Shown: in pieces, positions 2,402 through 24,365 of the stretch
How the letters are laid out: every line of letters starts with the position of its first letter
Position numbering within the stretch: position 1 is the first letter of the stretch
Virus record (IMG/VR): IMGVR_UViG_3300031857_000002
Location: 124,001 to 188,000 of that record
DNA: 64,000 nucleotides
Reading direction: 5' to 3' (one strand)
Translations under genes and position numbers: made by a program
Notes under the pieces: model-generated
Told to the model about the DNA's origin: nothing
What the model saw: only the letters and a program-made list of their open reading frames with translations
Database searches by the model: none

Positions 2402-2427
2402 ATATGCCTTTCTAATTTGTATAACGT

Positions 2428-2456
2428 ATTATAGCAAAGAGCAATTTACTGGTCAA
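2428..2456 (-). promoter_or_regulatory. sigma70-type promoter
   Basis: TTGACC-N17-TATAAT with extended -10 TG. Confidence 0.8.
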
Positions 2457-2516
2457 GTTAAAGAGGAGGGCAGTGCGACACAGCCCTGTGTTTTTGAACA
2501 CCACCCTCCTAATTAA

Positions 2517-3599: not shown

Positions 3600-3644
3600 G
3601 GGCTGTGCCTTTCTAGGGTTGAAAAATTAACTAACTAAGCTTCT

Positions 3645-3673
3645 ATTGTAGCAAAACACGATTTTCGTGTCAA
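3645..3673 (-). promoter_or_regulatory. sigma70-type promoter
   Basis: TTGACA-N17-TACAAT. Confidence 0.75.
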
Positions 3674-3855
3674 CTGTTGACTGTTGCAAAAGGGCTACAG
3701 TCTTCATGTTCCTGGTTGACAGGATTTTCTGAAGGATCTGCAACTTCGTACACCCAGTTGATGGGCACATCAAGAAGTCGGGCAATAGTAACAGGCAAAT
3801 AGCCCTCAACTAACATGCCGTCAATTTCCACGGCGAGATTGCTCATAGCACTCAT
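3670..3855 (-). CDS. small hypothetical protein
   Basis: AAGGAG RBS and its own promoter. Confidence 0.6.
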   Translation of the reverse strand: MSAMSNLAVEIDGMLVEGYLPVTIARLLDVPINWVYEVADPSENPVNQEHEDCSPFATVNS

Positions 3856-3885
3856 AACTAACTCCTTTTTAACTACAATACACGT

Positions 3886-3914
3886 ATTATAGCAAAAAGC
3901 AATTTAATGGTCAA
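3886..3914 (-). promoter_or_regulatory. sigma70-type promoter
   Basis: TTGACC-N17-TATAAT. Confidence 0.8.
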
Positions 3915-3933
3915 CCTGGGCAACCGCCACAAT

Positions 3934-5079
3934 CTATGCGGGTGCTGTGGGGGTAAAGTCTTTGATATAGATGGCCGAACTCATACACGTATTAAATCCT
4001 GTAATAGGGTTCCAAATCTCAGCATGATTGTTGTTTAGGTATTGTAACCCTTGCACCCAGTGGTTATAAATTTTTGAGTTGGTTTTTTCTGCTAGGTCTT
4101 TGAGTACTGCACTGTCGTAATTGGTTGTACTGCTGATACCGTTTTCTGATTTGGTGTCATAGTAATATTTGTTAAAACCTGAGGCTGCAACAGCATCAAA
4201 CACGTTGCTACGCCCAAAACTTTTGTTCCAATCAGCATACAGATCACCTCGTTCGCGCAAACTGCGATTGGTTGATTTTCCCTGAACCTCGTGAACAAAA
4301 TCATGACTGCACTCTGGATGACTTTCCATCCAGGCAATACTCATCCATACTTGTTTTATATAAAGTCTAGTAGCGTCCGGGCACAGATAAAACAAATGCC
4401 TAGGACCACCAAGATGATGGTACAATGCAGAATCTGGCATCTGTGCGTACCACTTTCCGTCACGTAAGTTAACTCTGGGTTTCTCTACGCCAGTGATGTC
4501 ACATCTACCTACAATTTGATCTAGTCCAACAAGATCTTTGTGATACCTTGCTGTATTGTATCTAGAAGTTTTAGTAAAATTATGAAAATTTCCTGGCCCG
4601 TGATAGATCCAATCAGCACCGTATTCCTGATAGAATTTAAATGTGGTATCTTGATCGTACTCAACTTGCCTAATTTTTAACCAAGGTTGGAGATGAGTCT
4701 TGATATGATATGCTTGCTTGAGTGCAATCAAGTGTTCAAAATTGTCCGACGTATTGATATAAGGTCGACTGTATATCAGTATTTCGTCTAGTCTTGTGTT
4801 AGTGCGTAAAATACTATCTAGAATAGTATGGCTATCATATCCTGCACTGTACCACAACGCCAAATACTGATGTTGCTCTCTTAGATCTCTAACACGTTGA
4901 TCTATGAGTGCGTGTATTGATTCTTCTGGTTCAAGGGTCCAGTTATGCTGGCGGTGCTCATCATCTGCAAAATAAAAATGCACACGATTCATGTCACCGC
5001 CAGCAGCCTCTACTGCCAACAGTTTGTTGATGGTTTTATAATCGCCTACTTGATAGTAAAGGTACTGATCAGAATTCAT
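3934..5079 (-). CDS. PP-loop (adenine nucleotide alpha hydrolase / asparagine synthetase-like) protein
   Basis: LWYSAGYDSH PP-loop motif; no QueC-type C-terminal Cys cluster. Confidence 0.6.
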   Translation of the reverse strand: MNSDQYLYYQVGDYKTINKLLAVEAAGGDMNRVHFYFADDEHRQHNWTLEPEESIHALIDQRVRDLREQHQYLALWYSAGYDSHTILDSILRTNTRLDEILIYSRPYINTSDNFEHLIALKQAYHIKTHLQPWLKIRQVEYDQDTTFKFYQEYGADWIYHGPGNFHNFTKTSRYNTARYHKDLVGLDQIVGRCDITGVEKPRVNLRDGKWYAQMPDSALYHHLGGPRHLFYLCPDATRLYIKQVWMSIAWMESHPECSHDFVHEVQGKSTNRSLRERGDLYADWNKSFGRSNVFDAVAASGFNKYYYDTKSENGISSTTNYDSAVLKDLAEKTNSKIYNHWVQGLQYLNNNHAEIWNPITGFNTCMSSAIYIKDFTPTAPA

Positions 5080-6744: not shown

Positions 6745-7817
6745 TTTATAAAACAATCATTGATAATTTTTTTATTTACACGTAGCCCCAATGCATATCG
6801 AGTCTGGGTACTGGCATTGATCACGCTATGTGTAAATGTATCATTGTTAATAACCAATGTTTCCTCGTCCATTGGCAATATTCCAGCCCCGGCGATTTTA
6901 ATAAAATTTCCCGCAGGCCATACCAATGGAACATAAAGTTGTGTACATCCTTGATAATTTTGATACTCGGGATTTGACTTACTTTGGTTATCCACATGAG
7001 GATATATAAAATCTCCCGGGGATAATTTTCCTATAAACACAGACCAACAGTCAAGGTCTAGTAGATCTATTATTTTTTGAACATGCGGGTAATCATCGGC
7101 ACAGGGCAATCTTTTACCATACTTGTACAACCAGGTAACGTCCCAGTTTGAATTGAACTTGTCTCTAAATTCTTTCTGATTTTCCGCTAGATGAGCAGAA
7201 GAGTTGGTTGTCTCGCCGATGTTTTTTATTGCTTCCTGGCCAGCAAGTTCTACTAGTGAATGTGGAATACTTTTTTTATACCACATATAAGGTATTTGCT
7301 CTGCAGTTGTTGTTTCTTTTGGAACTACTGTATAGTTAAAATTATGCAGGAAAAAATCTCTAATAATATTAGGAAACTTCTCTGAATCAACAGTCATGCT
7401 ATCAGGATAGTAAATCCAGTATTTTTCATATAGATTTGTTCCCAGCTCTCCAGGAGAAAATTTATTTTCAGCAAGCTCAAGCCAATAGCTGACAGGATAA
7501 CCAAAAGGTAAATGCCAGGTTTGTCCTGCTTCCCACAACACTGTTCCTGGTTGAAATTTTTGATGATCTGAATTTTTAATCCAGCTCATGTACAATAGTT
7601 TTCTTAGGCTAGACCCGTTTACAAATACTTGTAAAATTTCCAATCTGATAGGGTTGACACTGGTCAACGTCAATTTGTGTAGACCAAAGGTGCAATCTGT
7701 ATGGATAGAAATGCCAGCTTCGCTTGTTGTAAAGTCAACAGCTTGGCCGTTTATCTCAATACATATATCACTTTGGCTTATTTGTCCGGTTGTTTCAATA
7801 AAAATAAATGGTAACAT
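6741..7817 (-). CDS. protein with C-terminal Asp/Asn beta-hydroxylase-like 2OG-Fe(II) domain
   Basis: LSPGDFIYPHVD...FTHSVIN...TRY. Confidence 0.6.
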   Translation of the reverse strand: MLPFIFIETTGQISQSDICIEINGQAVDFTTSEAGISIHTDCTFGLHKLTLTSVNPIRLEILQVFVNGSSLRKLLYMSWIKNSDHQKFQPGTVLWEAGQTWHLPFGYPVSYWLELAENKFSPGELGTNLYEKYWIYYPDSMTVDSEKFPNIIRDFFLHNFNYTVVPKETTTAEQIPYMWYKKSIPHSLVELAGQEAIKNIGETTNSSAHLAENQKEFRDKFNSNWDVTWLYKYGKRLPCADDYPHVQKIIDLLDLDCWSVFIGKLSPGDFIYPHVDNQSKSNPEYQNYQGCTQLYVPLVWPAGNFIKIAGAGILPMDEETLVINNDTFTHSVINASTQTRYALGLRVNKKIINDCFIK

Positions 7818-12697: not shown

Positions 12698-12772
12698 TGG
12701 CCGGTCCGGAGAGATTCGAACTCCCGACAGCTGGTTTCGAAGACCAGAACTCTTCCACTGAGCTACGGACCG
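12698..12772 (-). tRNA. tRNA-Arg(TCG)
   Basis: Cloverleaf, loop CT-TCG-AA, encoded CCA. Confidence 0.9.
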
Positions 12773-12783
12773 TTAAATAGTTT

Positions 12784-13962
12784 ATGCTTAAATCTAAAAC
12801 TTCTTGTGTGATGCCTTACATGGGTCTAGCAATTCAAAATGACGGAGACTTTTGTGCTTGTAATAGAAACAATTGGAGTTATACCAATCGACAACAAGAA
12901 GTTTTGTTTGCCAATAAAAACACACTAGAAGAAGCATGGGCAAGCCCCACTAGAAAAATGTTGGCTGCTGGATTGGATTATGGAAAATCAATACCAAGTT
13001 GCAGTCCATGCACTAACTTAGAAGCCAGTGGCAAAATCAGTGCAAGACAAACGTTCAATAACCAATTTGGTCATCTTGCTCCGTTGCCTACTCAACCACG
13101 TGTGTTGATCATGAAACCAGGCAATGTTTGTAATCTGTCCTGTAGGATGTGCAATCCAGCAACCAGCACCACATGGTATCAGGATGGGTATAAATTAGCA
13201 AAGGCACATGACAATTTTGTTGGCACTCAAAAAGAATACACTGCACAATTTGAAACTATACGTTCGGCATTCAATCAAGAAAATCCCATATGGGATACCA
13301 TGGAACAGTGGCTGCCCAGTTTGGAATTTTTTGACATCTACGGAGGAGAACCATTCCTAGCTCCTGGTTTGTTTAAAGCCCTAACAGCAGTGGCCAAAGC
13401 AGACAAAAGTTCAACAGTGAGCTTGCAATTGCATACCAATGGTACGATATGGAATCCTGATTACTTGAATACATTGTCCAAGTACAAACACGTAAGAATA
13501 GGCATCAGCATTGACAGTGATGTAACCAGTCAGCTTGAGTACATTCGTTATCCACTGGAAGCTGACGTTGTTTGGCAAAATCTCAGCAGGTACAAAGACT
13601 GGGCAAGCAATCATTCCAACATAGAACTTTATATTTGTGTTACCCTTACGCCTCTTAATATATTTTACTTTGATTCAATTGACAAAAATTTAAGCAGGCA
13701 TTCATTACCAGTTGGCCACAATATTGTTTATAGCCCAACCGAATACGATGTGCGACACATACCAGTATCAGTGAGAAAAATTATTGCTGAGAAATTAAAA
13801 CATTATCCCACCCTGGCAAACTTTTTAATGCAGACCATACCAGGATGCGATGTTGCTTGGCCTAAGTTTTGGAAAATTACAAAAGAATTAGACAACATAC
13901 GCAATCAATCATTTGAATCAACGTTTCCTGAGTTTTATGAATTGATCAAGATGTATGTATGA
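12784..13962 (+). CDS. radical SAM protein with N-terminal SPASM/twitch-like Cys motif
   Basis: CNLSCRMC, GGEP, HTNGT, SID; preceded by TAAATA. Confidence 0.85.
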   Translation: MLKSKTSCVMPYMGLAIQNDGDFCACNRNNWSYTNRQQEVLFANKNTLEEAWASPTRKMLAAGLDYGKSIPSCSPCTNLEASGKISARQTFNNQFGHLAPLPTQPRVLIMKPGNVCNLSCRMCNPATSTTWYQDGYKLAKAHDNFVGTQKEYTAQFETIRSAFNQENPIWDTMEQWLPSLEFFDIYGGEPFLAPGLFKALTAVAKADKSSTVSLQLHTNGTIWNPDYLNTLSKYKHVRIGISIDSDVTSQLEYIRYPLEADVVWQNLSRYKDWASNHSNIELYICVTLTPLNIFYFDSIDKNLSRHSLPVGHNIVYSPTEYDVRHIPVSVRKIIAEKLKHYPTLANFLMQTIPGCDVAWPKFWKITKELDNIRNQSFESTFPEFYELIKMYV

Positions 13963-13963
13963 T

Positions 13964-14039
<76 letters not shown>

Positions 14040-14043
14040 AATT

Positions 14044-14118
14044 TGGAGCAGGATATCGGGTTCGAACCGATGACATTTTCGTTGGCAACGAAACATTCTA
14101 CCACTGAATTAATCCTGC
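14044..14118 (-). tRNA. tRNA-Gly(GCC)
   Basis: Cloverleaf, U73 + CCA. Confidence 0.92.
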
Positions 14119-14130
14119 AATCCGTTACTA

Positions 14131-14601
14131 TTAGGCAGCTCGAAGACTTTTAAATCTATCTGCCGCGTATGATGCCGCAAATGCTTCAGGCTTCACAAAT
14201 GGTACTACATTGCATACACCTTTGATGTAGCCAATAGCCTGGCTAATAACACAGCTTGAGCCGTACATTTCGTCAGGGTTGATGTCCAAATGAACTTCAA
14301 CATTGCGTCCTTCAAGTACTTCTGCTAATTTTAAATACAGCTCAGCTACTTTGTAGACTTCGGTCATCAGACGCATGGCAGGCTTGGATTCTTTTTGGTC
14401 GTACACACGTTCACGGTGCACCTCGCCAAATAGTTTACAGCCGTTGTTGCCATTGATGTGTACTACAACCGCTAACACATAGTCCGCATGCCACACACCG
14501 TCAATTCTGATTCTTTCACTGTCACACCCGAGATAAATTTTGGTCTCTGGAGTCTGATCCTTGATAAATTTTGATACCTCTGCCAGATTTAGTTTTTTCA
14601 T
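14131..14601 (-). CDS. RNase H-like YkuK-family protein
   Basis: IYLGCDS, RLMTEV, EVHLDIN, KPEAFAASYAAD. Confidence 0.75.
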   Translation of the reverse strand: MKKLNLAEVSKFIKDQTPETKIYLGCDSERIRIDGVWHADYVLAVVVHINGNNGCKLFGEVHRERVYDQKESKPAMRLMTEVYKVAELYLKLAEVLEGRNVEVHLDINPDEMYGSSCVISQAIGYIKGVCNVVPFVKPEAFAASYAADRFKSLRAA

Positions 14602-14605
14602 GATA

Positions 14606-15772
14606 CTATTTTTGTTTAGTGGATTGATACACCTGATTGATTTCTTCTAAACTAAGTGATTGCCAATTGAGATGTAAAATATCTGTGTTAGCAGGACTTG
14701 ATACATTCAATTGGTATCCGTGCTGATGAATAATTTCATCTTGTATATCCTTGGGTAATGTATAAAAATTGTTTTCATCAGATATCATGGGCCATGATGG
14801 ATCTTTGATTTTGGTATAAAACTCTGTCCAATTCGACTGTTGAACGTGTATATTACTATTCTTAAAGATTCTTGTCAGAACATGTGCTTCTATCCCACAA
14901 TGACTGGTAAGGTAAGAATCTAACACTCCAGTGGCCTCCCACTTGTTTATAGATTCAAACCACTGGAGATTGGATTGCGAGTTGATATAATTATCTTGAT
15001 AATTTGTTACATGGTCGCAGTTGTATGCATCACTTACCCCGCTGTTATTCATAAAATTTTCTAGCCACTGTGGAAAATAATTGGATGCAATGTCGGCACA
15101 TGAAATATCAAAAACTCTATTGTCTAACGCAAAATTGGTAACATAAGTTGACTCATTTACTTCGTGTGGCTGTAGTCTATTTCTTGTTTGATACCAGTTC
15201 ACTCCTCTTTGAATCTCGTTTTTCAATTCGTTGTAATCAGGTTTCTCCATGTGTTCAAAGAAGGCAGAATGATGTTTAACAATAAAATTTCTGTAGGCTT
15301 TACTTGATTCATGGAAACTAAAATCTTCTTCCCGTGGATCTGTGGGCAATAGTTGAAGTTTTGCATCACCGTATGAAGGCCACTTAGTAACACAATTAAT
15401 AGTGCCATAGGCGTCAACGTCAACGTCAGAATTGTTATGAACAATAACAAATACTCCAGTTGGATCCGATTGCATTATGATCCTAACTGATTGATACACG
15501 GTCGGAGTACCTTCATTGATAATGTATATTTTTTTATCTGTTGGTCGGTTGTAGATAACCCATGACAAGTGCCACAAAATACCCTGATGCGTAGGAACTC
15601 TCACATGCTTGTGTGAGGTGCCAGCACCTCCGAATTGAGCACTAGTTGATGTATTAATTGGTGACTTTACAGTGGTGTTGTAAAGATCGTTGTCACTGAT
15701 GTGAATAGCCCAATTGAGATAACTTCCGCTGTATCCAGCTGGATACAGTATGTATATGTTTTTTGTAAGCAT
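14606..15772 (-). CDS. hypothetical protein, possibly P-loop/sulfotransferase-like
   Basis: N-terminal YPAGYSGSYL loop; AT-rich accessory gene. Confidence 0.45.
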   Translation of the reverse strand: MLTKNIYILYPAGYSGSYLNWAIHISDNDLYNTTVKSPINTSTSAQFGGAGTSHKHVRVPTHQGILWHLSWVIYNRPTDKKIYIINEGTPTVYQSVRIIMQSDPTGVFVIVHNNSDVDVDAYGTINCVTKWPSYGDAKLQLLPTDPREEDFSFHESSKAYRNFIVKHHSAFFEHMEKPDYNELKNEIQRGVNWYQTRNRLQPHEVNESTYVTNFALDNRVFDISCADIASNYFPQWLENFMNNSGVSDAYNCDHVTNYQDNYINSQSNLQWFESINKWEATGVLDSYLTSHCGIEAHVLTRIFKNSNIHVQQSNWTEFYTKIKDPSWPMISDENNFYTLPKDIQDEIIHQHGYQLNVSSPANTDILHLNWQSLSLEEINQVYQSTKQK

Positions 15773-15811
15773 TAATTAATGATGCAATGATGTTGCACCA
15801 CTCAAAAATAA

Positions 15812-16084
15812 TTATTCAGGCGGTGCGTCTGTTATTGAGGTTGATACAATGTTACAATTATAAATTTCTGCCTGTGCCGTGACGAAGGAAATAAACTCTT
15901 CGGCGGCAGCTAAATCTCTCCAGTATCTTTTGGTAGTAACTTCGTCAACCGCTTCCCAGCGACCATTAGTTTTTCCATCAGTTTGCATCTCTTCAAGTTT
16001 TGGTGCGCGAACTTCGGTCAGTCGTGTTTCATTCTGGTGGTCTGCAGATCCCCAGATAATTGTAGTAATTTTAGTCATTGACAT
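15812..16084 (-). CDS. hypothetical protein
   Basis: AAGGA RBS and TATAAATA upstream. Confidence 0.6.
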   Translation of the reverse strand: MSMTKITTIIWGSADHQNETRLTEVRAPKLEEMQTDGKTNGRWEAVDEVTTKRYWRDLAAAEEFISFVTAQAEIYNCNIVSTSITDAPPE

Positions 16085-16158
16085 AATAGCGTTTCCTTTG
16101 TGCTTATTTATAGGCAAGCAGTAACATCTCCAAGAGATTATCTAACATACAATATGAA

Positions 16159-16330
16159 TTTGCAAACAAACCGGTTTCGCTAGGGCGGGAATTTGTACAC
16201 CAATCGTTAATAGATTAGCTCTACACCGGCAACAATCAAGGACCTCTCATCCTGACAACTGGTCCGACAGATACGCATCACTGCGCAGAGCCATCGGGGT
16301 TTACCCCTAAACGTTTTTTTTGTTTGCAAA
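16159..16330 (-). ncRNA. unassigned structured RNA, copy 1 (paralog of 20219..20376)
   Basis: 12-bp terminal inverted repeat TTTGCAAACAAA; internal hairpins; shared motifs AGGTCC, TGCC, AGAGCTA, ACAAAT. Confidence 0.65.
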
Positions 16331-16333
16331 ACT

Positions 16334-16418
16334 TGGTGCCCTAGGTCGGACTCGAACCGACACATATTTCTACGCCAGAACCTAAATCTGGTGCGTCTAC
16401 CAATTTCGCCACCAGGGC
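16334..16418 (-). tRNA. tRNA-Leu(TAG)
   Basis: Cloverleaf with long variable arm, encoded CCA. Confidence 0.92.
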
Positions 16419-16592
16419 TTATACTTCTACAACTTCTTGTAAACTGTCTTTGCGCATGAGAACTTTTCTTTCTTCTCCTACGCGGCGAACACTTAGGTAC
16501 TCAATCCCATCTAGTCGACGTACCATTCGTATGTTGTCACAGATGTAACGTTCAAGTGTGATTTTGTTTTCAAAAGTTTTAGTTTTTGTCAT
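16419..16592 (-). CDS. 57-aa hypothetical protein (MTKTKTFENKITLERYICDN...), not in the ORF track
   Basis: AGGAG RBS; translated by hand. Confidence 0.6.
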   Translation of the reverse strand: MTKTKTFENKITLERYICDNIRMVRRLDGIEYLSVRRVGEERKVLMRKDSLQEVVEV

Positions 16593-16622
16593 AGTGGTCT
16601 CCTATTAGATGTTGTACTTATC

Positions 16623-16714
16623 TGGCGGAAGACGGAGGAGTCGAACCCCATCCCATTTCTGAGAACCTGGTTTTCAAGGCCAGTCGCGGCACCAACGCCA
16701 CTGCATCATCTTCC
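16623..16714 (-). tRNA. tRNA-Ser(TGA)
   Basis: Long variable arm, G73 + CCA. Confidence 0.88.
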
Positions 16715-16721
16715 AAAAAGG

Positions 16722-16798
16722 TGGTCGGAATAGTAGGATTCGAACCTACGACCTCCTGGTCCCAAACCAGGCGCACTACCAGGCTGTGCTACACTCCG
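16722..16798 (-). tRNA. tRNA-Pro(TGG)
   Basis: Cloverleaf, encoded CCA. Confidence 0.92.
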
Positions 16799-16804
16799 AA
16801 TGTG

Positions 16805-16879
16805 TGGTACCTGGACACGGTTTCGAACCGCGGACCCTCTCCGTGTAAAGGAGACGCTCTACCCCTGAGCTATCCAGGC
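16805..16879 (-). tRNA. tRNA-Val(TAC)
   Basis: Cloverleaf, encoded CCA. Confidence 0.92.
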
Positions 16880-16887
16880 AAATTGTG

Positions 16888-16961
16888 TGGAGCGGAGTAG
16901 GGGAATCGAACCCCTCGCTTTAGCTTGGAAGGCTAAGGTATTACCACTATACGAACTCCGC
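16888..16961 (-). tRNA. tRNA-Gly(TCC)
   Basis: Cloverleaf, encoded CCA. Confidence 0.92.
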
Positions 16962-17010
16962 GTGTTGATACTTATAATAGTGTAACATGTACACTATAAA
17001 TAGTCAATCT

Positions 17011-18171
17011 ATGAACTTCCCAACCAACTACTGTGCATTGCCGTTTAGAGGCATGCAACTCGAATGTGATGGTGAGATTAAATCTTGCTGTCTGTACAAA
17101 CCACATCTTGATCAATCAATTACTCAATATCATATGACCAATTATGATCACTGGTGGAACAAATCTCTTGACCGAATACAAAATCATGTGATCAACAACA
17201 CCGTTGATCCTGGCTGCTCTTATTGTCTAGAGCCAACTATTCTTCCGCATCCTATGCGAACAGGCGCCAATGACTTTTTCAAACATGATCCACAATACAC
17301 ACCAGGTGACTCGCCTGAGTGGTTGGACATACGATTTGGCAACTTCTGCAATCTCAAATGTATGATGTGTACTCCTCTAAATAGTAGTCAAATTGAACTG
17401 GAATACAAAAACAATACCGCAGCCTACAATGCACAAGGAATTGCACACAGCAGTGGATGGAAACGATTCAGCATCGAAGACCAAGCGGCCAGCAAAGAAA
17501 ACTGGTGGGACAATTCTGAAACGTTTGCCAAGGTAGTCCAAATAGTAAATCGTGCTAGATATGTGAACTTCTCAGGAGGTGAACCTCTAATGATGCCACA
17601 ATTGTATGATCTCATGGATGCTATGAATCCCAACTGCATCATTACATTCAATACCAACTTGACCAGACTCACTGATCGCACTATGCAAGCATTGAAAAAA
17701 TTTAAAGATGTTAACTTGCAAGTCAGTTTAGACGGTGTTGGCGCACATCAAGAGTGGATACGTTGGAACAGCAACTGGCCTGAACTTGATCGCAACATTC
17801 AAACAGTTTGTAACACACCTAACATTAGAGTTACATTTAGTTATTTGTTACAACACACCACAATCTACACATGGCCAGCACTTTGGAAATATCTTGAACC
17901 ATTGAACTGTCAAATACTTGCAATGCCAGTGTACGCAGACACTATTGGCAAAGGTGTGTTAACACAACATTCGGCTGTGTCTACGGATGTTGAACGGTTT
18001 GTAGATTGGATCAAAGCCAACCCCAGTTCATGCAATCAAGAAATTGAACACTGGATTAGCAGTTATCAATTTGATCCTGTACTACACAAACAGTTTAGGG
18101 ACTATGTTGGTATGCTTGACAACATACGTGGTGGCAATTTCCGTGCCACGTTTGATCCTGCTTGGGACTAA
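17011..18171 (+). CDS. radical SAM protein with N-terminal SPASM/twitch-like Cys motif
   Basis: CALPF..DGEIKSCC; CNLKCMMC; SGGEP; TATAAATA just upstream. Confidence 0.85.
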   Translation: MNFPTNYCALPFRGMQLECDGEIKSCCLYKPHLDQSITQYHMTNYDHWWNKSLDRIQNHVINNTVDPGCSYCLEPTILPHPMRTGANDFFKHDPQYTPGDSPEWLDIRFGNFCNLKCMMCTPLNSSQIELEYKNNTAAYNAQGIAHSSGWKRFSIEDQAASKENWWDNSETFAKVVQIVNRARYVNFSGGEPLMMPQLYDLMDAMNPNCIITFNTNLTRLTDRTMQALKKFKDVNLQVSLDGVGAHQEWIRWNSNWPELDRNIQTVCNTPNIRVTFSYLLQHTTIYTWPALWKYLEPLNCQILAMPVYADTIGKGVLTQHSAVSTDVERFVDWIKANPSSCNQEIEHWISSYQFDPVLHKQFRDYVGMLDNIRGGNFRATFDPAWD

Positions 18172-18524
18172 TCCCAATACATTTCATTGTGGCACTGGTA
18201 GTAATACTCACGCTCTAAGGCAATCATGTCCTCATAGTCAACTCTGTAGTTGAACATGGGATTGCCCCCAATGGAAATTCTAACATAACTTGCCGGCGCC
18301 CACTCGGGACCTGGCGTTTGTTTTTTGTACTGGATGAACCAGGCATTGTTGTTGTGCTGGAACGAATGGCCTCGTTGGTTACGCCAGTTTGCCACAATGT
18401 CCGCAAACACTGCCTGAGGCAAACTCCATGTGTGTGCATGTGCATCACTCACACGTATGCTCAAGTCTATTGACTCGCGATCCTTGAACACATATAATTT
18501 TAATGGTTTGGTAAATTCTAACAT
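18168..18524 (-). CDS. hypothetical protein
   Basis: ORF between tRNA-Gln and the radical SAM gene. Confidence 0.55.
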   Translation of the reverse strand: MLEFTKPLKLYVFKDRESIDLSIRVSDAHAHTWSLPQAVFADIVANWRNQRGHSFQHNNNAWFIQYKKQTPGPEWAPASYVRISIGGNPMFNYRVDYEDMIALEREYYYQCHNEMYWD

Positions 18525-18538
18525 ACACTACTTATTGG

Positions 18539-18615
18539 TGGCAGGAGATATAGGATTCGAACCTATGCGTGTCGGAATCAAAATCCGATGCCTTGACCAA
18601 CTTGGCGAATCTCCA
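18539..18615 (-). tRNA. tRNA-Gln(TTG)
   Basis: Cloverleaf, unpaired 1:72, encoded CCA. Confidence 0.9.
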
Positions 18616-18626
18616 GTAAAACTACA

Positions 18627-18701
18627 TGGTGGATGAGAGTAGAGTCGAACTACTACTTGACTCCGTATGAAGGAGGCGCACTACCATTATGCTACTCATC
18701 C
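18627..18701 (-). tRNA. tRNA-Met(CAT), probably elongator
   Basis: G1-C72 paired, loop TT-CAT-AC, encoded CCA. Confidence 0.8.
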
Positions 18702-18778
18702 TGGGGTGCATGATGGGGGTCGAACCCACGCATATCGGAATCACAATCCGAGGTCTTAACCACTTGACGACACGCACC
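18702..18778 (-). tRNA. tRNA-His(GTG)
   Basis: Encoded G-1 and C73, encoded CCA. Confidence 0.92.
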
Positions 18779-18894
18779 ATATAGGAGCACTCTCAACAGC
18801 AGGCCTAGAAGGCAATCTGGTTGCTGAAACTTTTGCATCTGCAGATACTAGGTTTCTTCTTCCGCTTTGACTTACGCCAAGAATGCTTTTATAT
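18779..18894 (-). ncRNA. unassigned stem-capped RNA between tRNA-Lys and tRNA-His
   Basis: Terminal stem AUAUAAAAGCAUUCU / AGAGUGCUCCUAUAU fills the entire spacer. Confidence 0.5.
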
Positions 18895-18967
18895 GGTAGG
18901 GGTGTTCGGGAACGATCCGAATTTTACTGGTTAAAAGCCAGTTACTTCACCTTAAAGTTTCACCCCC
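18894..18967 (-). tRNA. tRNA-Lys(TTT) with atypical T-loop
   Basis: Anticodon arm ACTGG-CTTTTAA-CCAGT; T-loop ATCGTTC; encoded CCA. Confidence 0.85.
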
Positions 18968-19017
18968 GTAGGTTTGGGTATCTTATCACTGTCCATCGGG
19001 ACTCTCCTTTAAAAATC

Positions 19018-19091
19018 TGGTAGCCTGTAGAGGTTACGATCCTCTGTCGCTCGATTATCAGTCGAGTGCTCTTCCATTGAGCTAACGGGCT
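19018..19091 (-). tRNA. tRNA-Ile(GAT)
   Basis: Cloverleaf; T-loop ATCGTAA; encoded CCA. Confidence 0.85.
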
Positions 19092-19095
19092 GTAT

Positions 19096-19170
19096 TGGTA
19101 CCGCCATATGGAATCGAACCACAATTTCCAGGTTCGTAGCCTGGAGTATTATCCATTATACTATAGCGAT
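19096..19170 (-). tRNA. tRNA-Arg(ACG)
   Basis: Cloverleaf, encoded CCA. Confidence 0.9.
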
Positions 19171-19175
19171 GTTGT

Positions 19176-19250
19176 TGGTGCCGACTATCGGATTCGAACT
19201 GATGACCTATCGCTTACAAGGCGATTGCACTACCACTGTGCTAAGTCGGC
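19176..19250 (-). tRNA. tRNA-Thr(TGT)
   Basis: Cloverleaf, encoded CCA. Confidence 0.92.
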
Positions 19251-19254
19251 TAAT

Positions 19255-19330
19255 TGGCTCCCCAACGTGGGCTCGAACCACGGACCAACAGATTAACAGT
19301 CTGCTACTCTACCGACTGAGCTATTGGGGA
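19255..19330 (-). tRNA. tRNA-Asn(GTT)
   Basis: Cloverleaf, encoded CCA. Confidence 0.92.
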
Positions 19331-19340
19331 ATGATTGATA

Positions 19341-19430
19341 TGGCCGAGAGCCTGGGAGTCGAACCCAGTGACCGTATTACTACGGTCTACGGATTAGCAA
19401 TCCGCTGCATTACCGTCCTGCCCGCTCTCG
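19341..19430 (-). tRNA. tRNA-Ser(GCT)
   Basis: Long variable arm, encoded CCA. Confidence 0.9.
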
Positions 19431-19470
19431 ACAATCTACTTAGTAGGCACTCAAGCCTTCTACAAAAATC

Positions 19471-19545
19471 TGGTGGACCGTCCCGGGATCGAACCGGGGA
19501 CTGAAGCTTGCAAAGCTACTGTGTTCCCATCTATACCAACAGCCC
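19471..19545 (-). tRNA. tRNA-Ala(TGC)
   Basis: G3:U70 pair, encoded CCA. Confidence 0.92.
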
Positions 19546-19550
19546 ATGTG

Positions 19551-19624
19551 TGGCGTACCTCCAAGGACTCGAACCTTGACTGACGGTTTTGGAGACCGCG
19601 GTGCTGCCATTACACCAGAGATAC
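19551..19624 (-). tRNA. tRNA-Trp(CCA)
   Basis: Loop CT-CCA-AA, encoded CCA end. Confidence 0.9.
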
Positions 19625-19794
19625 CTAACACACTCTTTGGAATGTGTGTATTAAAGCACTCTAAAATACTTAGGCTGCCTGTTCTTAAAGAATGCTTTAA
19701 TACGCTGTAATTTTTTGTTCTACAAGAAGAACTCTATCCTACAGGCCGCCCATTTGCAGTTTTGAGTGATGCAGGCTCTCGTTGCCATTGCACT

Positions 19795-19829
19795 AAAAGA
19801 AAAACCCTAGAGTGTTTAGTTCCAGGGTC
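19795..19829 (-). terminator. intrinsic terminator of the putative attenuator
   Basis: Stem GACCCUGGA / UCUAGGGUU followed by UUUCUUUU. Confidence 0.8.
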
Positions 19830-19853
19830 CTTTGGGTAGAATACTAATGTACT

Positions 19854-19970
19854 TTACACGGACCCCGGGTCTCCTGGAATGCTATTCACGCGACCGTTCG
19901 CATGCGTCCAGGCCGATGGCTGGATAAACATGGATGTCTTTGACAGTGAATAGAATTTTGTTTTCATCAT
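19854..19970 (-). CDS. putative 38-aa attenuator leader peptide MMKTKFYSLSKTSMFIQPSAWTHANGRVNSIPGDPGSV
   Basis: ATG lies 6 nt after the -10 hexamer (leaderless); last codons form the antiterminator arm. Confidence 0.7.
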   Translation of the reverse strand: MMKTKFYSLSKTSMFIQPSAWTHANGRVNSIPGDPGSV

Positions 19971-19976
19971 GTACCT

Positions 19977-20005
19977 ATTATAGTTTATTTATGGTTGACA
20001 GTCAA
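19977..20005 (-). promoter_or_regulatory. sigma70 promoter of the leader/tRNA operon
   Basis: TTGACT-N17-TATAAT; palindrome GGTTGAC-N-GTCAACC overlaps the -35. Confidence 0.8.
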
Positions 20006-20042
20006 CCTGTTTTTGAACTTTTATTTATCAAGTTCACCAAAT

Positions 20043-20118
20043 TGGTTGCGGGAGGAGGAATCGAACCTTCCATCTGTGAGCTTATGAGACTCACGTGCGA
20101 CCACTACACTTTCCCGCG
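20043..20118 (-). tRNA. initiator tRNA-fMet(CAT)
   Basis: C1:A72 mismatch, 5' CGCGGG, ends AACCA. Confidence 0.85.
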
Positions 20119-20137
20119 GTAATACTTATACAAAAAT

Positions 20138-20215
20138 TGGAACACAGGGTGAGATTTGAACTCACGACTTTACGGATTTGCAATCCGTTGCATTTGACCG
20201 CTCTGCCACCTGTGC
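20138..20215 (-). tRNA. tRNA-Cys(GCA)
   Basis: U73 + CCA. Confidence 0.9.
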
Positions 20216-20218
20216 ATA

Positions 20219-20376
20219 TTTTTATAGTCAAGCACCGAGAGATGCCGATTTGTCAACAAAGTAGCTAGCTCTGACAAGCGAATGGCAGTTATGTCAGGAC
20301 CTGTTCCTCGCACAGTTAGGCCCGAATAGTGACAGCGTCCCGTCACGATACCTTTATCGATGCTTGACTATAAAAA
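20219..20376 (-). ncRNA. unassigned structured RNA, copy 2 (paralog of 16159..16330)
   Basis: Perfect 16-bp terminal inverted repeat TTTTTATAGTCAAGCA; internal hairpins; shared motifs with copy 1. Confidence 0.7.
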
Positions 20377-20459
20377 CATATTGAAACACACTAACTACCT
20401 TGGTATGTACTCAAGTTCATTGAACCGCTACGACCCTATCTTTAATGTGCTTCAATATG
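20377..20459 (-). ncRNA. unassigned stem-capped RNA
   Basis: Terminal stem CATATTGAAGCACA / TGTGTTTCAATATG. Confidence 0.5.
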
Positions 20460-20658
20460 CTCTGCATCCCCCGGCGGTAATTGTAGTACAGAAAGATACG
20501 ACGCTATCGTACCCATCACACGTACCTTCCACCCGCTTCCCGACAGGGACCGTTCTCGCATTGCTAGCGGCCTTTAGGTTCGAAGACTACCACCCGTAGT
20601 TGTCACACTACTTCTCATCCTGTGGGTCACAGTATCCAGAGACTAATCTGGAACGTTC
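20460..20658 (-). ncRNA. unassigned GC-rich structured RNA directly 3' of tRNA-Tyr
   Basis: No credible ORF; hairpins such as TCCAGA/TCTGGA, CTGTG/CACAG, GTAGT/ACTAC, TACGA/TCGTA. Confidence 0.55.
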
Positions 20659-20743
20659 TGGTGGAGATGATAGGGATCGAACCTATCGTGACCGAAGTCG
20701 GAGGAGTTACAGTCCCCTGCCACACCATTGCGGCGGCATCTCC
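20659..20743 (-). tRNA. tRNA-Tyr(GTA)
   Basis: Long variable arm, encoded CCA. Confidence 0.9.
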
Positions 20744-20748
20744 ATGTG

Positions 20749-20823
20749 TGGTACTCGATAGCGGAGTCGAACCGCTCTTGCCTGGATGAAAACCAGATGT
20801 CCTAACCGATAGACGAATCGAGC
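20749..20823 (-). tRNA. tRNA-Glu(TTC)
   Basis: Cloverleaf, encoded CCA. Confidence 0.9.
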
Positions 20824-20831
20824 AAATAAGG

Positions 20832-20896
20832 GAGAGCCACGGTTGCAGGACCTAGTGCTTCGTTACCGAAGGAAGTGTCCAGGCGATGTGACTCTC
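20832..20896 (-). ncRNA. unassigned 65-nt structured RNA
   Basis: Stems GAGAGTCAC/GTGGCTCTC, CCTGG/CTAGG and CTTCG-GTAA-CGAAG (GNRA loop). Confidence 0.55.
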
Positions 20897-20902
20897 AAAA
20901 CT

Positions 20903-20977
20903 TGGCGGTCTGTGGGGGAATCGAACCCCCGTAAGTGGATAGACAATCCACAGTAATAACCTCTATACGAACAGACC
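20903..20977 (-). tRNA. tRNA-Asp(GTC)
   Basis: Cloverleaf, G73 + CCA. Confidence 0.9.
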
Positions 20978-20985
20978 AAAATCTA

Positions 20986-21200
20986 CTATATTAAAAAATA
21001 CTAAAGGAACCATTGTGCATCTATGTCTACCTATAGGACCGTCTCCTATAGACCTGCACGGTCATTACTGCCTACATGCTCCGCCGCTTTTCTGGACATT
21101 TCTGCCCGGTTTCATAGACCTAGCTTGAGCGTGGGCGGCCCCACTGTCCTCGCCTTAGATCCCTAACGGTGTAGGTAACCTTTAATACATTTTAATATAG
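20986..21200 (-). ncRNA. unassigned ~215-nt structured RNA, first element after the tandem promoters
   Basis: ~20-bp AU-rich terminal stem (CTATATTAAAA...TAAAGG / CCTTTA...TTTTAATATAG) enclosing a GC-rich multi-hairpin core. Confidence 0.6.
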
Positions 21201-21233
21201 CAACCCTTGCGGGCTACTACAAGCAAACTTAAC

Positions 21234-21266
21234 TTTTTAAAGAACATCTAGTTAATTTCTAACTAG
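21234..21266 (-). promoter_or_regulatory. boxB-like hairpin plus boxA antitermination signal
   Basis: CTAGTTA-GAAAT-TAACTAG hairpin followed by TGTTCTTTAAAAA (rrn boxA: TGCTCTTTAACA). Confidence 0.65.
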
Positions 21267-21271
21267 TCTCT

Positions 21272-21300
21272 AGTATAACACAATAGCTATATCTAGTCAA
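21272..21300 (-). promoter_or_regulatory. tRNA/ncRNA operon promoter P2
   Basis: TTGACT-N17-TATACT. Confidence 0.75.
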
Positions 21301-21368
21301 CTTGTTTTTGCAAGTCCCTTCATTTTGGAAGGATTCTGCTAAGAACACTTGTTTCTTAACTTGTTTCT

Positions 21369-21397
21369 ATTGTAGCAAATTGCAAATATTGCGTCAA
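21369..21397 (-). promoter_or_regulatory. tRNA/ncRNA operon promoter P1
   Basis: TTGACG-N17-TACAAT. Confidence 0.7.
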
Positions 21398-21405
21398 CCA
21401 CCAAT

Positions 21406-21431
21406 AAAAAACCCGCTTAGTGCGGGTTTTT
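21406..21431. terminator. intrinsic terminator
   Basis: AAAAAACCCGC-TTAGT-GCGGGTTTTT. Confidence 0.85.
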
Positions 21432-21457
21432 ATAAATGTAATACTTTTGTTTACATT

Positions 21458-22357
21458 TTATGCAACGAACGGAGTATACTCAATTCCTGTTGTTGCTAAC
21501 CCTACTAATCCAATTGTGGTTTCAAACGCTGCCAACTCACTTGCGGCTACTAACACATCTGCTTGGCTCAAATTGCTACTGGTCATCCAAGCTGTGTAGT
21601 CAGTGACTTGTGTCAATGTAGCATCTGTACCAAATACGTTTTTGTAAACGTGCTTGATGAATGTTTCATTGCTGACACCACCTGCATCAGTTTTGTAAGC
21701 ATCGGTGGCCAACAATGCTGTGGCTAGTTCTTTGTTTGTCCACCCTGCATCGGCAAGATAGATACCAATGCCTTTGTATGCGTTGGTTACGTCTGTGGTA
21801 CCCAATGCGGCTGCCAACAATGCGTAAACATCACCAGCACGACCTGCGGCATCATAGGCAATGGCCTTGTCTGTGAATACCACACGCTCGTGGTCAGCAA
21901 GATTGAATTCCATGTTGCTGACCAATGTGCTGGCTAAGGTAACTTTAGCGGCAGTTTTGGTTGTGGTGAATTCTGTGCTGGCACCACCCATGGTGTAGGT
22001 GTCAACGCCTGTGGTGCCTGTAACATCCACAACGACATCAACTGTGCCATCACCTGCACGACCTGTGCCCACTACACCAAAGGTGGCAACTTTACCTAGT
22101 GTGCCAACAGTAGCCACTGTAACGATCAAGTTGTTGGCTACTGTACCACCCAATGCTGTTCCAGCAAGAGTGATAGTGTCTCCTGCCACATAGCCGCGAC
22201 CTGCACTTGCGGCAAGACTATCTAATACAACGGAATAAACACCGTTGGTCTTTGTAACATCAAATGCGGCTTCAACACCTGCACCGCCCGTTAACCCTGT
22301 AACGTTTTGGTATGTGGCATTGACTGCTTTGTCTTTGATTGTGATTGTTGTTGTCAT
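21458..22357 (-). CDS. Thr/Ala/Gly-rich S-layer-like protein with C-terminal DUF4214-like domain
   Basis: ERVVFTDKAIAYD, VSNETFIKHVYKNVFG; strongly biased composition. Confidence 0.65.
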   Translation of the reverse strand: MTTTITIKDKAVNATYQNVTGLTGGAGVEAAFDVTKTNGVYSVVLDSLAASAGRGYVAGDTITLAGTALGGTVANNLIVTVATVGTLGKVATFGVVGTGRAGDGTVDVVVDVTGTTGVDTYTMGGASTEFTTTKTAAKVTLASTLVSNMEFNLADHERVVFTDKAIAYDAAGRAGDVYALLAAALGTTDVTNAYKGIGIYLADAGWTNKELATALLATDAYKTDAGGVSNETFIKHVYKNVFGTDATLTQVTDYTAWMTSSNLSQADVLVAASELAAFETTIGLVGLATTGIEYTPFVA

Positions 22358-22485
22358 AATTTTCCTTTAAAATAAAAATGATCTATAAACTTAATTAGTG
22401 GTTTATACTAGTAGTATACATGAATTTTCTAACAAAACTTGTGCGTGTGCGCACATGATTGGTACGAAAGTTTGAAATTATTGCC

Positions 22486-22512
22486 AAAAGAAAACCCGCC
22501 GGAGCGGGTTTT
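22486..22512. terminator. intrinsic terminator ending the tmRNA coding piece
   Basis: AAAACCCGC-CGGA-GCGGGTTTT. Confidence 0.85.
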
Positions 22513-22694
22513 GGTGGTTTCTGTTACGAGGTATTTCCTACCCTAGGCTGCGTTTAGGCTGCCAAAGCGAACTGTTCGTCGTTTGCATTTACGGTTTTTG
22601 TGTCTTCGACCAGGTTACCCCAATCCTAACGGCTTCTACCTTGCCGGACTGTCCATGTTGTTACTCTTGACCCAATCGATCCTGTGTCAGGCCC
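22495..22694 (-). ncRNA. ssrA: two-piece (permuted) tmRNA, coding piece; tag ANDEQFALAA* at 22554..22586
   Basis: 5' GGGCCTG acceptor strand, GGATCGA D-region, GTAAAT-GCA resume context, typical proteolysis tag. Confidence 0.9.
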
Positions 22695-22695
22695 A

Positions 22696-22905
22696 TCATA
22701 ACGATTTTCGTCCCCAATTAATAATGTTCCATACTCTTTCATGAATATAATACAATATTGTATTCACTATTAATTGTGTTATAGCAATAGGTCCTGCAAT
22801 TGATAAGTTACCTGAAATTAACAAGACTATGAGGAATGTTGCACCCGATCCTGTTAATCTCCAACTTATAGTTTTTACAATGCTTCTCAAATTGCTATCG
22901 TTCAT
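22696..22905 (-). CDS. DUF2061-like small membrane protein inside the tmRNA intervening segment
   Basis: RSIVKTISWR...YYIHERVW..I.WG; AAGGA RBS immediately after the tmRNA CCA. Confidence 0.8.
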   Translation of the reverse strand: MNDSNLRSIVKTISWRLTGSGATFLIVLLISGNLSIAGPIAITQLIVNTILYYIHERVWNIINWGRKSL

Positions 22906-22914
22906 AAATCCTTA

Positions 22915-22978
22915 TGGTGGACCTGGCGGGCACTGCCCCCGCGTCTTGAATCCTTTTCTCTCTACTTCATACAGTCTT
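22915..22978 (-). ncRNA. ssrA: two-piece tmRNA, acceptor piece
   Basis: T-arm GCGGG-GGCAGTG-CCCGC; CAGGTCC-A-CCA pairs with GGGCCTG giving G3:U70. Confidence 0.88.
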
Positions 22979-23156
22979 AAACTTGCTCCACTATCTGAAT
23001 ATCCAGTCTTAACGGCTGATCCCAGTTGACCCAGGGTATGGTGCCGGCTTCTCTGGCACTCTCAATATCATCCAATATTTCGGTGACATTGTAGCCAGGC
23101 CCAGGAATGTCTCGTTCCTGCCATAGTTGATTTTGCATTGAGATAGTGATTTTCAT
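22977..23156 (-). CDS. 59-aa hypothetical protein (MKITISMQNQLWQERD...), not in the ORF track
   Basis: Translated by hand; TAAATA upstream. Confidence 0.5.
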   Translation of the reverse strand: MKITISMQNQLWQERDIPGPGYNVTEILDDIESAREAGTIPWVNWDQPLRLDIQIVEQV

Positions 23157-23167
23157 AACGATATTTA

Positions 23168-23722
23168 TTAGTCAACATCAATATCATCGTCTAGCACAAC
23201 CCATCCCAATCGAAACAAATCTTCACGAATTTCATCAGTGATCACGCTTTCAGGCACATAATTTTTTTTAGCTAGAATCTCTGCCTCTATTTCTGGACTA
23301 GATTCACTACCTCCGCCAATTACACCGCCAATGCCTGAACAATACCAATCCATGTAATCACCTTGTACTCGCATGTCTGCAATGATACCGCCAGCATACC
23401 GCCAGCTACAACTCCAGGTTTGATTCTTAAGAGTGGCCCAGACTTCGTTTTTTTGAAAGGTACGATTGCACATGGCCGCATAGAGATTCTGCGAATAGGA
23501 CTTGCTAGAACGAACTTTGGCCAACATGAAATCAGAGGTACGAAGATCGTACTCCATGTTGTTTTGTTGCCATTCGGTATCTTGTTCTTTGGCCATCTTG
23601 TTAATATTTGCTTGTTCAAACATTTTGATGTAGGCTTTATTGAGTTTTTTGCCGTTTTCTGCACATCGTTTGATGTAGTTTTCTTTTTGGAAAGTATTAC
23701 GACTAGGACTACAACTGATCAT
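23168..23722 (-). CDS. hypothetical phage protein
   Basis: GGAG RBS; conserved-looking motifs QNLYAAMCN and SWRYAGG. Confidence 0.65.
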   Translation of the reverse strand: MISCSPSRNTFQKENYIKRCAENGKKLNKAYIKMFEQANINKMAKEQDTEWQQNNMEYDLRTSDFMLAKVRSSKSYSQNLYAAMCNRTFQKNEVWATLKNQTWSCSWRYAGGIIADMRVQGDYMDWYCSGIGGVIGGGSESSPEIEAEILAKKNYVPESVITDEIREDLFRLGWVVLDDDIDVD

Positions 23723-23735
23723 TGTTACTCCAAAA

Positions 23736-23819
23736 TGGTACGAGTAGCCGGAGTCGAACCGGCACGCATTAAGCGGCGGATTTTAAGTCCGCTGGGTCTA
23801 CCGATTCCCCCATACTCGT
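23736..23819 (-). tRNA. tRNA-Leu(TAA)
   Basis: Long variable arm, encoded CCA. Confidence 0.9.
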
Positions 23820-23826
23820 ATGTTGT

Positions 23827-23988
23827 TTATCCGCCTCGGCCAGTGACCTTTTTAACAGGTTTACCCACTGGTGCAGGTGCTGTTGTTTTTTTAACTGACT
23901 TGGAACCTTTGGTAGGTTTTGCATCAGGATGTTGCGCGGCATGTTTTTTCTCTAATGCCGATTTTACTGCTGTGATAAATGAAGCCAT
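23827..23988 (-). CDS. 53-aa Lys-rich basic protein (MASFITAVKSALEKK...KKVTGRGG), not in the ORF track
   Basis: AGGAG RBS; translated by hand. Confidence 0.6.
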   Translation of the reverse strand: MASFITAVKSALEKKHAAQHPDAKPTKGSKSVKKTTAPAPVGKPVKKVTGRGG

Positions 23989-23997
23989 AGTGTTCTC

Positions 23998-24198
23998 CTA
24001 GTACTTGTTATTTAACGCGGCCCAGGTCATCCAGGCACGAAAAGCATTATATACTGTGAGGGCTTCGTTTTCGTCTACAGGAACTTTGACACCACGAACA
24101 TAAAATCCATCTGCAGTGACTCGCAACATTTCATCATCGCTACCTGCATGAAGTATGATTTTGGGTTTGCTATCTGATTGATGTAGCGTGTATGTCAT
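23998..24198 (-). CDS. hypothetical protein
   Basis: AAGGA RBS after the tRNA-Arg CCA. Confidence 0.55.
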   Translation of the reverse strand: MTYTLHQSDSKPKIILHAGSDDEMLRVTADGFYVRGVKVPVDENEALTVYNAFRAWMTWAALNNKY

Positions 24199-24207
24199 AA
24201 TATTCCT

Positions 24208-24282
24208 TGGTCCGGCCACTAGGAATCGAACCTAGATTGATAGCTTAGAAGGCTACTGTATTATCCATTATACTATGGCCAG
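24208..24282 (-). tRNA. tRNA-Arg(TCT)
   Basis: Cloverleaf, encoded CCA. Confidence 0.9.
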
Positions 24283-24288
24283 AGAGTT

Positions 24289-24365
24289 TGGTGCGCCCAC
24301 AAGGACTTGAACCTTGGACCAAAGGATTATGAGTCCTCTGCTCTGACCAACTGAGCTATAGGCGC
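24289..24365 (-). tRNA. tRNA(CAT), probably Ile2 (lysidine)
   Basis: GACTCATAATC anticodon arm and GGTTCAAGTCC T-arm resemble bacterial Ile2. Confidence 0.8.

Follow-up and report, generated by a model that had tools for sequence, protein, structure and literature searches.

Two-piece, circularly permuted tmRNAs are known from Alphaproteobacteria (Rfam RF01849; general model RF04321). In these genes an acceptor piece precedes an intervening sequence and a coding piece, and the intervening sequence is absent from the mature tmRNA (PMC11915505). In the alpha model the consensus spacer is a few dozen non-coding bases. Unusual contents of tmRNA genes have been catalogued in the 2025 tmRNA database paper, which covers 11,946 permuted sequences and 79 phage sequences (PMC11915505). 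These include group I introns in the T-loop, some with LAGLIDADG homing endonuclease genes, one permuted gene with a tRNA-Ala gene in its intervening sequence, and one with a repetitive element there. That paper mentions no protein-coding spacer, and our full-text literature searches found no earlier description of one, although bacterial permuted tmRNAs could not be surveyed for coding spacers.

Here we analyzed a window of 64,000 nucleotides, bases 124001-188000 of the 320-kb virus record IMGVR_UViG_3300031857_000002, which CheckV rates 92% complete. The window encodes a family-B DNA polymerase, a FEN-type exonuclease, and other typical large-phage genes. Between 12.7 and 24.4 kb lies a minus-strand array of 26 tRNA genes with small ORFs packed between them. 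Inside this array, ARAGORN calls a permuted tmRNA at 22463-23007(-) with the tag ANDEQFALAA*. In agreement with this, Rfam gives RF04321 tmRNA_permuted at 104 bits (cut-off 47) at 22554-22976(-) and RF01849 alpha_tmRNA at 64.3 bits (cut-off 50) at 22510-23028(-). The features of the locus, all on the minus strand, are as follows.

22977-23156 (-): upstream 59-aa ORF whose TAA abuts the first base of the acceptor piece, part of the same tRNA/ORF array.
22915-22976 (-): tmRNA acceptor piece, with the 5' strands of the inter-piece helices, the T-arm GCGGG-GGCAGUG-CCCGC, the acceptor 3' strand CAGGUCC, discriminator A, and an encoded CCA.
22695-22914 (-): intervening sequence (spacer), 220 nt, GC 0.31.
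22906-22914 (-): 5' arm of the spacer-closing helix (UAAGGAUUU), containing the Shine-Dalgarno-like AAGGA (22913-22909) 3 nt before the AUG.
22696-22905 (-): cargo gene for a 69-aa DUF2061 small membrane protein, with its TGA stop at 22698-22696 ending 1 nt before G1.
22699-22707 (-): 3' arm of the closing helix (AAAUCGUUA), also the last codons (..K S L) of the ORF.
22695-22698 (-): conserved leader UGAU facing ACCA, which supplies the stop codon of the ORF and the base at -1 of the presumed RNase P site.
22513-22694 (-): tmRNA coding piece, with the acceptor 5' strand GGGCCUG, the 3' strands of the inter-piece helices, the tag frame, and the alpha-type tail AACAGAAACCACCA; the mature 3' end near 22513-22517 is inferred.
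22554-22586 (-): tag reading frame GCA..TAA encoding ANDEQFALAA*.
22486-22512 (-): terminator-like hairpin AAAACCCGC-UCCG-GCGGGUUUU (22512-22491) followed by CUUUU.

The acceptor stem GGGCCUG/CAGGUCC contains the G3:U70 pair, and the inter-piece helices GACUGU/ACAGUC and GAUUCAA/UUGGGUC are paired in the covariance-model alignments. The locus also shares with the alphaproteobacterial two-piece tmRNAs the T-loop GGCnGUn, an AND...LAA-type tag, and the tail AACAGAAnCCnCCA. The inferred 3' end agrees with the end of conservation among relatives at ..CCACCAAAA and with adapter-tagged contig ends at 22515-22517 in an RNA run. The anatomy proposed in the first-pass annotation, from the permuted alpha-type tmRNA to the AT-rich spacer filled by a ribosome-binding site and a DUF2061-like ORF, is right in every detail that could be checked. 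That annotation also noted a resemblance of the T-loop GGCAGUG to alphaproteobacterial two-piece tmRNAs. The T-loop fits the alpha_tmRNA consensus GGCgGUA, but the exact 18-nt T-arm also occurs in one-piece tmRNAs of Patescibacteria. A genome scan with this T-arm returned 13 hits, mostly from such genomes and none from Alphaproteobacteria, and it therefore does not identify the host.

The spacer reads UAAGGAUUU, then ATG and 69 codons, then TGA, then U. The ORF matches Pfam DUF2061 (PF09834) over the whole profile (positions 1-52 of 52, E 3.5e-20, 72.6 bits, cut-off 23.1), contains hydrophobic segments, and is the only DUF2061 copy in the 320-kb genome. It has 400 homologues, with variants 91-99% identical in independent assemblies. 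A search of PHROGs gave nothing for the cargo or its neighbors, and blastn of the locus against 50,697 GenBank phage records gave no match. The GC content of the spacer, 0.31, compares with 0.57 and 0.51 for the two RNA pieces and is four standard deviations below that of the long genes of the window (0.438 ± 0.032, minimum 0.354). Among 1000 shuffles, none of the window's spacer gave an ORF as space-filling. The arrangement is not an assembly artefact, as 14 DNA runs from at least eight studies contain 62-85% of the sampled words of 22450-23050 and four independent ENA assemblies carry a 98%-identical spacer.

Only 9 nt separate CCA from the ATG and 1 nt separates the stop codon from G1. No terminator-like site lies between the two pieces, and promoter-like hits do not exceed shuffle expectation (6 against 5.1 expected). 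The ORF therefore has no room for expression signals of its own, in contrast to an autonomous phage cargo gene (moron) flanked by its own promoter and terminator. No intron family matched at E up to 1 in 22400-23100, and the insert lies between CCA and G1 rather than in the T-loop.

To place the locus in context, we compared it with more than 230 environmental phage tmRNA loci (numbered here with the prefix L). ARAGORN found only a minority of these tmRNAs, and the halves were located by BLAST and exact motifs instead. The 31-nt T-arm-plus-acceptor sequence at 22945-22915 is unchanged in at least 119 IMG/VR contigs, several of them 230-350 kb long. In 116 loci that hold both pieces, the last 12 nt of the acceptor piece and the first 14 nt of the coding piece are identical, whereas the spacer ranges from 27 to 382 nt with 66 distinct sequences. 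The tag peptides occur in 24 variants, all open and almost all ending in AA, and keep the AND..(L/M/V)AA-type form whatever the spacer holds. A second scan with the alpha-consensus T-loop brought in 110 further permuted tmRNAs on phage contigs, with the same closing helix and UGAU leader, spacers of 5-224 nt, and again Shine-Dalgarno-led ORFs.

Interestingly, the variable spacers share a conserved frame. In 63 distinct spacers, bases 1-10 after CCA pair with bases -5 to -14 before G1 in 56-63 cases, with three to six different standard pair types at most of positions 4-10. The mean is 11.5 pairs, against 7.05 ± 2.5 when 5' and 3' ends of different spacers are combined. The last four bases are UGAU in 44 and UAAU in 17 of the 63 spacers, including spacers without an ORF. 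In the window, eight of nine positions of the two arms pair. Folding of the acceptor strand, spacer, and coding strand together places the acceptor stem stacked on this helix at -70.7 kcal/mol (shuffles -44.8, z -6.3), and the spacer alone gives z -3.8. This frame explains two oddities of the cargo proteins. Their C-termini are nearly always ..SL or ..FL, because these codons pair with the purine-rich Shine-Dalgarno region, and their stop codon is the pre-existing UGA or UAA of the leader.

About 60% of the distinct spacers are plain hairpins, and the remaining 26 or so of 63 hold a single ORF behind a Shine-Dalgarno sequence. These ORFs fall into at least 18 unrelated families of 20-123 aa. 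All 19 spacers of 138 nt or more are 82-99% filled by the ORF, against 34% in shuffles. Thirteen of 18 families stop exactly 1 nt before G1 (binomial p 8.5e-4 against 1/3), and two read on into the tmRNA itself (L058/L083 and L008). Another cargo is Pfam DUF6356, which occurs in both sets of loci, while the remaining cargos scanned match no Pfam or PHROGs family and none matched a nuclease or homing-endonuclease family. Eight of 14 cargos checked have a transmembrane-like segment. In nine cargo pairs compared, dN/dS is about 0.1 in the four most diverged, with 0.10 for DUF2061 (window against L031, dS 1.4) and 0.12-0.15 for two other well-diverged families. The other pairs differ too little to judge, three near-identical ones giving 0.44, 1.40, or no value from only 1-7 differences. 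Cargos of the second set gave dN/dS of 0.05-0.10.

Cargo and backbone have different histories. L009 is the closest relative of the window phage, with flanking proteins 92-98% identical and tmRNA halves 100% identical, but it carries an unrelated 72-aa ORF in a 232-nt spacer. In the alignment, similarity stops just after CCA-UAAGGA and resumes at CUUAUGAU-GGG. L058 is equally close and has a 99-nt spacer with a 40-aa hydrophobic mini-ORF. The upstream 59-aa ORF is 72-98% identical in L009, L058, L021, L040, and L061, and L009, L058, and L031 have different hairpin sequences, all self-complementary, at the place of the terminator-like hairpin. The reverse is also observed. The four ENA assemblies (L318-L321) carry the 98%-identical spacer inside a tmRNA whose halves are only 79-83% identical and whose T-arm is different, the block of near-identity running from CGCCAGGUCCACCA to UUAUGAU-GGGCCUG. 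Identities to the window for acceptor piece, spacer, and coding piece are 1.00, 0.61, and 1.00 in L009; 0.98, 0.77, and 0.92-0.97 in L031; 0.81, 0.98, and 0.83 in L318; and 0.76, 0.86, and 0.79 in L310. Further DUF2061 spacers, all 220 nt, sit in two more backbones (L310/L312 and L313/L314). A DUF2061 tree (67 columns) was too poorly resolved to decide between one capture and several. Related rearrangements exist, including an orphan acceptor piece followed by cargo-like genes in L071. In L316, a 97%-identical DUF2061 gene lies outside any spacer, its end overlapping a 26-nt copy of the acceptor piece's 5' start, and the gene thus does not need the slot.

In four metatranscriptomes from lakes, the two tmRNA pieces reach word depths of 100-1600, against 0-45 for flanking protein genes, and some contigs join an acceptor piece to a coding piece across other spacers. 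The tmRNA family is therefore expressed, and cargo does not correlate with decay. The window's own spacer had zero depth in these four runs, which contain relatives with other spacers, and only one RNA run contains 2 of its 16 sampled words; expression of this particular spacer is thus an inference. The phage genome has no SmpB gene, so that tmRNA function depends on the host protein.

Taken together, these observations are best explained by a functional, phage-encoded, alpha-type two-piece tmRNA gene whose intervening sequence has been taken over as a slot for a small promoterless gene, a reading to which we assign a probability of about 0.7. In this proposal, one transcript runs from an upstream promoter through the acceptor piece, the spacer, and the coding piece to the hairpin terminator. 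The halves pair through the acceptor stem and the two inter-piece helices, and the ends of the spacer form a closing helix of 9-13 bp stacked under the acceptor stem. Processing of the tRNA type, with RNase P at G1 and 3' maturation at the encoded CCA as expected from bacterial two-piece tmRNAs, would then separate the pieces and free a 220-nt RNA that runs from a Shine-Dalgarno sequence to one base past a stop codon. Translation may use the precursor, the excised RNA, or both. The Shine-Dalgarno sequence and AUG lie inside the predicted closing helix, and their spacing of 3 nt is shorter than the 5-6 nt most common in the genes of the window, suggesting that expression may be modest or regulated. 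The first-pass annotation had inferred a neutral cargo site and the release of a mini-mRNA. The cargo site is strongly supported by the comparative data, but "neutral" is too weak, since the slot imposes the closing helix and the stop codon and the more diverged ORFs show purifying selection; release of a translatable mini-mRNA remains inferred. The unit of acceptor stem plus spacer moves between tmRNA genes. The simplest mechanism, also inferred, is homologous recombination between co-infecting phages, with the conserved acceptor-stem sequences, or longer stretches of the halves when these are similar, as arms.

Other readings of the locus are less likely. The protein could be made only co-transcriptionally from the unprocessed precursor, with the excised spacer degraded like other tmRNA intervening sequences. 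This is a minority possibility but the strongest of the alternatives. Contigs that bridge the two pieces have about a tenth of the depth of the pieces; on the other hand, the excised RNA keeps both arms of the closing helix, and its paired 3' end could protect it. It is improbable that the ORF acts mainly in cis, its translation opening the closing helix and timing tmRNA folding or processing. A stop codon 1 nt before G1 would place a terminating ribosome on the acceptor 5' strand, and the Shine-Dalgarno sequence and last codons form the helix. However, the well-diverged cargos show purifying selection on the amino-acid sequence (dN/dS 0.05-0.15), two cargos belong to Pfam families widespread outside spacers, and the tmRNAs of the roughly 60% of spacers without an ORF are equally conserved.

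Equally doubtful is a tmRNA gene split or disabled by the insertion, with halves that are relics or are transcribed separately. A weak promoter-like match lies inside the ORF at 22773-22744 (9 of 12), and L071 and L316 show that pieces can become separated. In contrast, both halves are identical to those of cargo-free relatives and L009, the acceptor stem, tag frame, closing helix, and UGAU leader are all retained, and spacers of 27-60 nt leave no room for a second promoter, so co-transcription is the ancestral state. A chance open frame in an AT-rich, structured, non-coding spacer might agree with the folding of the spacer alone, but is effectively refuted by the Pfam match, the dN/dS of 0.10, and the shuffles.

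The locus meets the sequence criteria of a permuted alpha-type tmRNA and differs in being encoded by a 320-kb phage and in carrying an ordinary small protein gene in its non-religated spacer. Intervening sequences of some bacterial 23S rRNA genes probably offer the nearest analogue, being spacers that appear to be closed by a helix and cut out without religation and that may contain a conserved ORF. Those appear to carry one protein family, whereas at least 18 unrelated families rotate through the slot described here; the host RNA here is a tmRNA, and the Pfam scan returned only DUF2061. Integron gene cassettes are a functional analogy, as promoterless small ORFs are exchanged at a fixed site and expressed from an upstream promoter, but no integrase or attC-type sites are involved here and there is one cassette per site. 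A more far-reaching view is possible, although we consider it somewhat less likely than not. Phage two-piece tmRNA genes would work as a previously unrecognized gene-cassette system, in which processing of a highly expressed stable-RNA precursor liberates a self-paired ("panhandle") mini-mRNA and the conserved Ala acceptor-stem sequences serve as portable recombination arms, letting small, mostly membrane-targeted accessory genes hop between unrelated phage tmRNA genes without any dedicated recombinase.

The intervening sequence of a permuted tmRNA has been treated as disposable filler. Here it is a conserved and constrained slot for small protein genes that turns over rapidly, across hundreds of environmental phage genomes. 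If the inferred expression route is right, it gives a second example, after what appears to be the case in 23S rRNA intervening sequences, of protein genes riding inside stable-RNA genes, and it would be a natural design in which RNA processing, rather than a promoter and terminator, defines an mRNA. Both the tmRNAs and their cargo are being mis-annotated, since ARAGORN missed most family members and gene callers label these ORFs as ordinary hypothetical proteins, for example "uncharacterized membrane protein", with no record of the tmRNA around them. The cargos are enriched in tiny membrane proteins. They include DUF2061, whose bacterial homologues are induced by iron limitation in Caulobacter and carry Fur-related signals in Shewanella, the only functional lead for this protein. 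Together, the cargos form a defined and testable pool of candidate host-manipulation or superinfection-exclusion genes.

The tmRNA is located in a region of the window in which tRNA genes and small ORFs are closely packed. The features of this region are the following.

12698-24365, minus strand: 26 tRNA genes covering most amino acids, all on one strand, with small ORFs between them
24402-24374: promoter-like site
21458-22357, minus strand: gene just downstream of the tmRNA terminator, encoding a 299-aa Thr/Ala/Gly-rich protein with a C-terminal DUF4214 domain

One of the small ORFs starts 14 nt after tRNA-Leu (23736), and a 59-aa ORF has its stop codon abutting the first base of the tmRNA. 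With the promoter-like site, the array has the appearance of one long processed transcription unit. The protein with the DUF4214 domain is 81-96% identical in several related contigs.

At the 3' end of the tmRNA (window 22486-22520), an alignment with the related loci L009, L058, and L031 shows that sequence conservation of the coding piece ends at ..AACAGAAACCACCAAAA. The hairpin that follows differs in sequence in every relative but remains a hairpin. Furthermore, adapter-tagged contig ends in one RNA run fall at 22515-22517, suggesting that the terminator is trimmed off the mature coding piece.

Some spacer ORFs, as in the loci L058 (5893-6012, minus strand), L083, and L008, are out of frame with the UGA leader. 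These ORFs read 34-69 nt into the tmRNA coding piece, so that a protein C-terminus is encoded by the tRNA-like 5' end. The 40-aa L058/L083 pair is conserved and hydrophobic.

In addition to DUF2061, the small family DUF6356 is a second example of one cargo family in several backbones. It is observed as spacer cargo (L026:772-924, minus strand; L192:8744-8932, plus strand; L254) in two tmRNA lineages that differ in T-loop and acceptor stem. In the related contig L071 (oriented coordinates 2140-4464; Rfam hit at 7262-7651, minus strand), an orphan acceptor piece of the window type is followed by an SD-led 60-aa membrane ORF, which is a homologue of the cargo of another locus, L028, and by several larger genes. 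A complete permuted tmRNA with a different T-arm and its own 38-aa cargo lies about 1.9 kb downstream.

DUF2061 is also found outside the spacer. In the contigs L316 (3399-3721), L315, and L317, a DUF2061 gene 97% identical to that of the window lies outside any spacer, 15 nt after a second Asp/Arg-hydroxylase-like gene. Interestingly, its last codons overlap a 26-nt copy of the 5' start of the tmRNA acceptor piece, which then lacks a T-arm; all four assemblies break within about 110 nt downstream. In most other viral contigs with DUF2061 outside a tmRNA (L123-L173), the DUF2061 reading frame starts right at, or is fused to, the end of a gene that finishes ..ISATKIRKELGL, possibly a nucleotidyltransferase-type motif. 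This recurrent pairing may bear on the function of DUF2061.

ARAGORN failed to call the tmRNA in most of the related loci (L001-L175), including many with short spacers and identical halves. In contrast, Rfam RF04321 detects those that were tested. Phage permuted tmRNAs are probably under-annotated.

The exact 18-nt T-arm of this phage tmRNA (GCGGG-GGCAGUG-CCCGC) recurs in genome contigs (L177-L189) at the 3' end of ordinary one-piece tmRNA genes, in genomes labelled Gracilibacteria, Saccharibacteria, and other Patescibacteria, while it was found in no alphaproteobacterial genome. This recurrence may reflect convergence, mis-binned contigs, or a host clue, and it does not identify the host. 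The genes next to other cargo-bearing tmRNAs (L313/L314, L312, L205) include a ferredoxin-dependent bilin reductase (PF05996), ThyX, and a PAAR protein, and L205 (2150-2198) has a glutamine riboswitch 165 nt upstream of its tmRNA. These features appear to be typical of phages of cyanobacteria or marine oligotrophs, which hints that the hosts are diverse.
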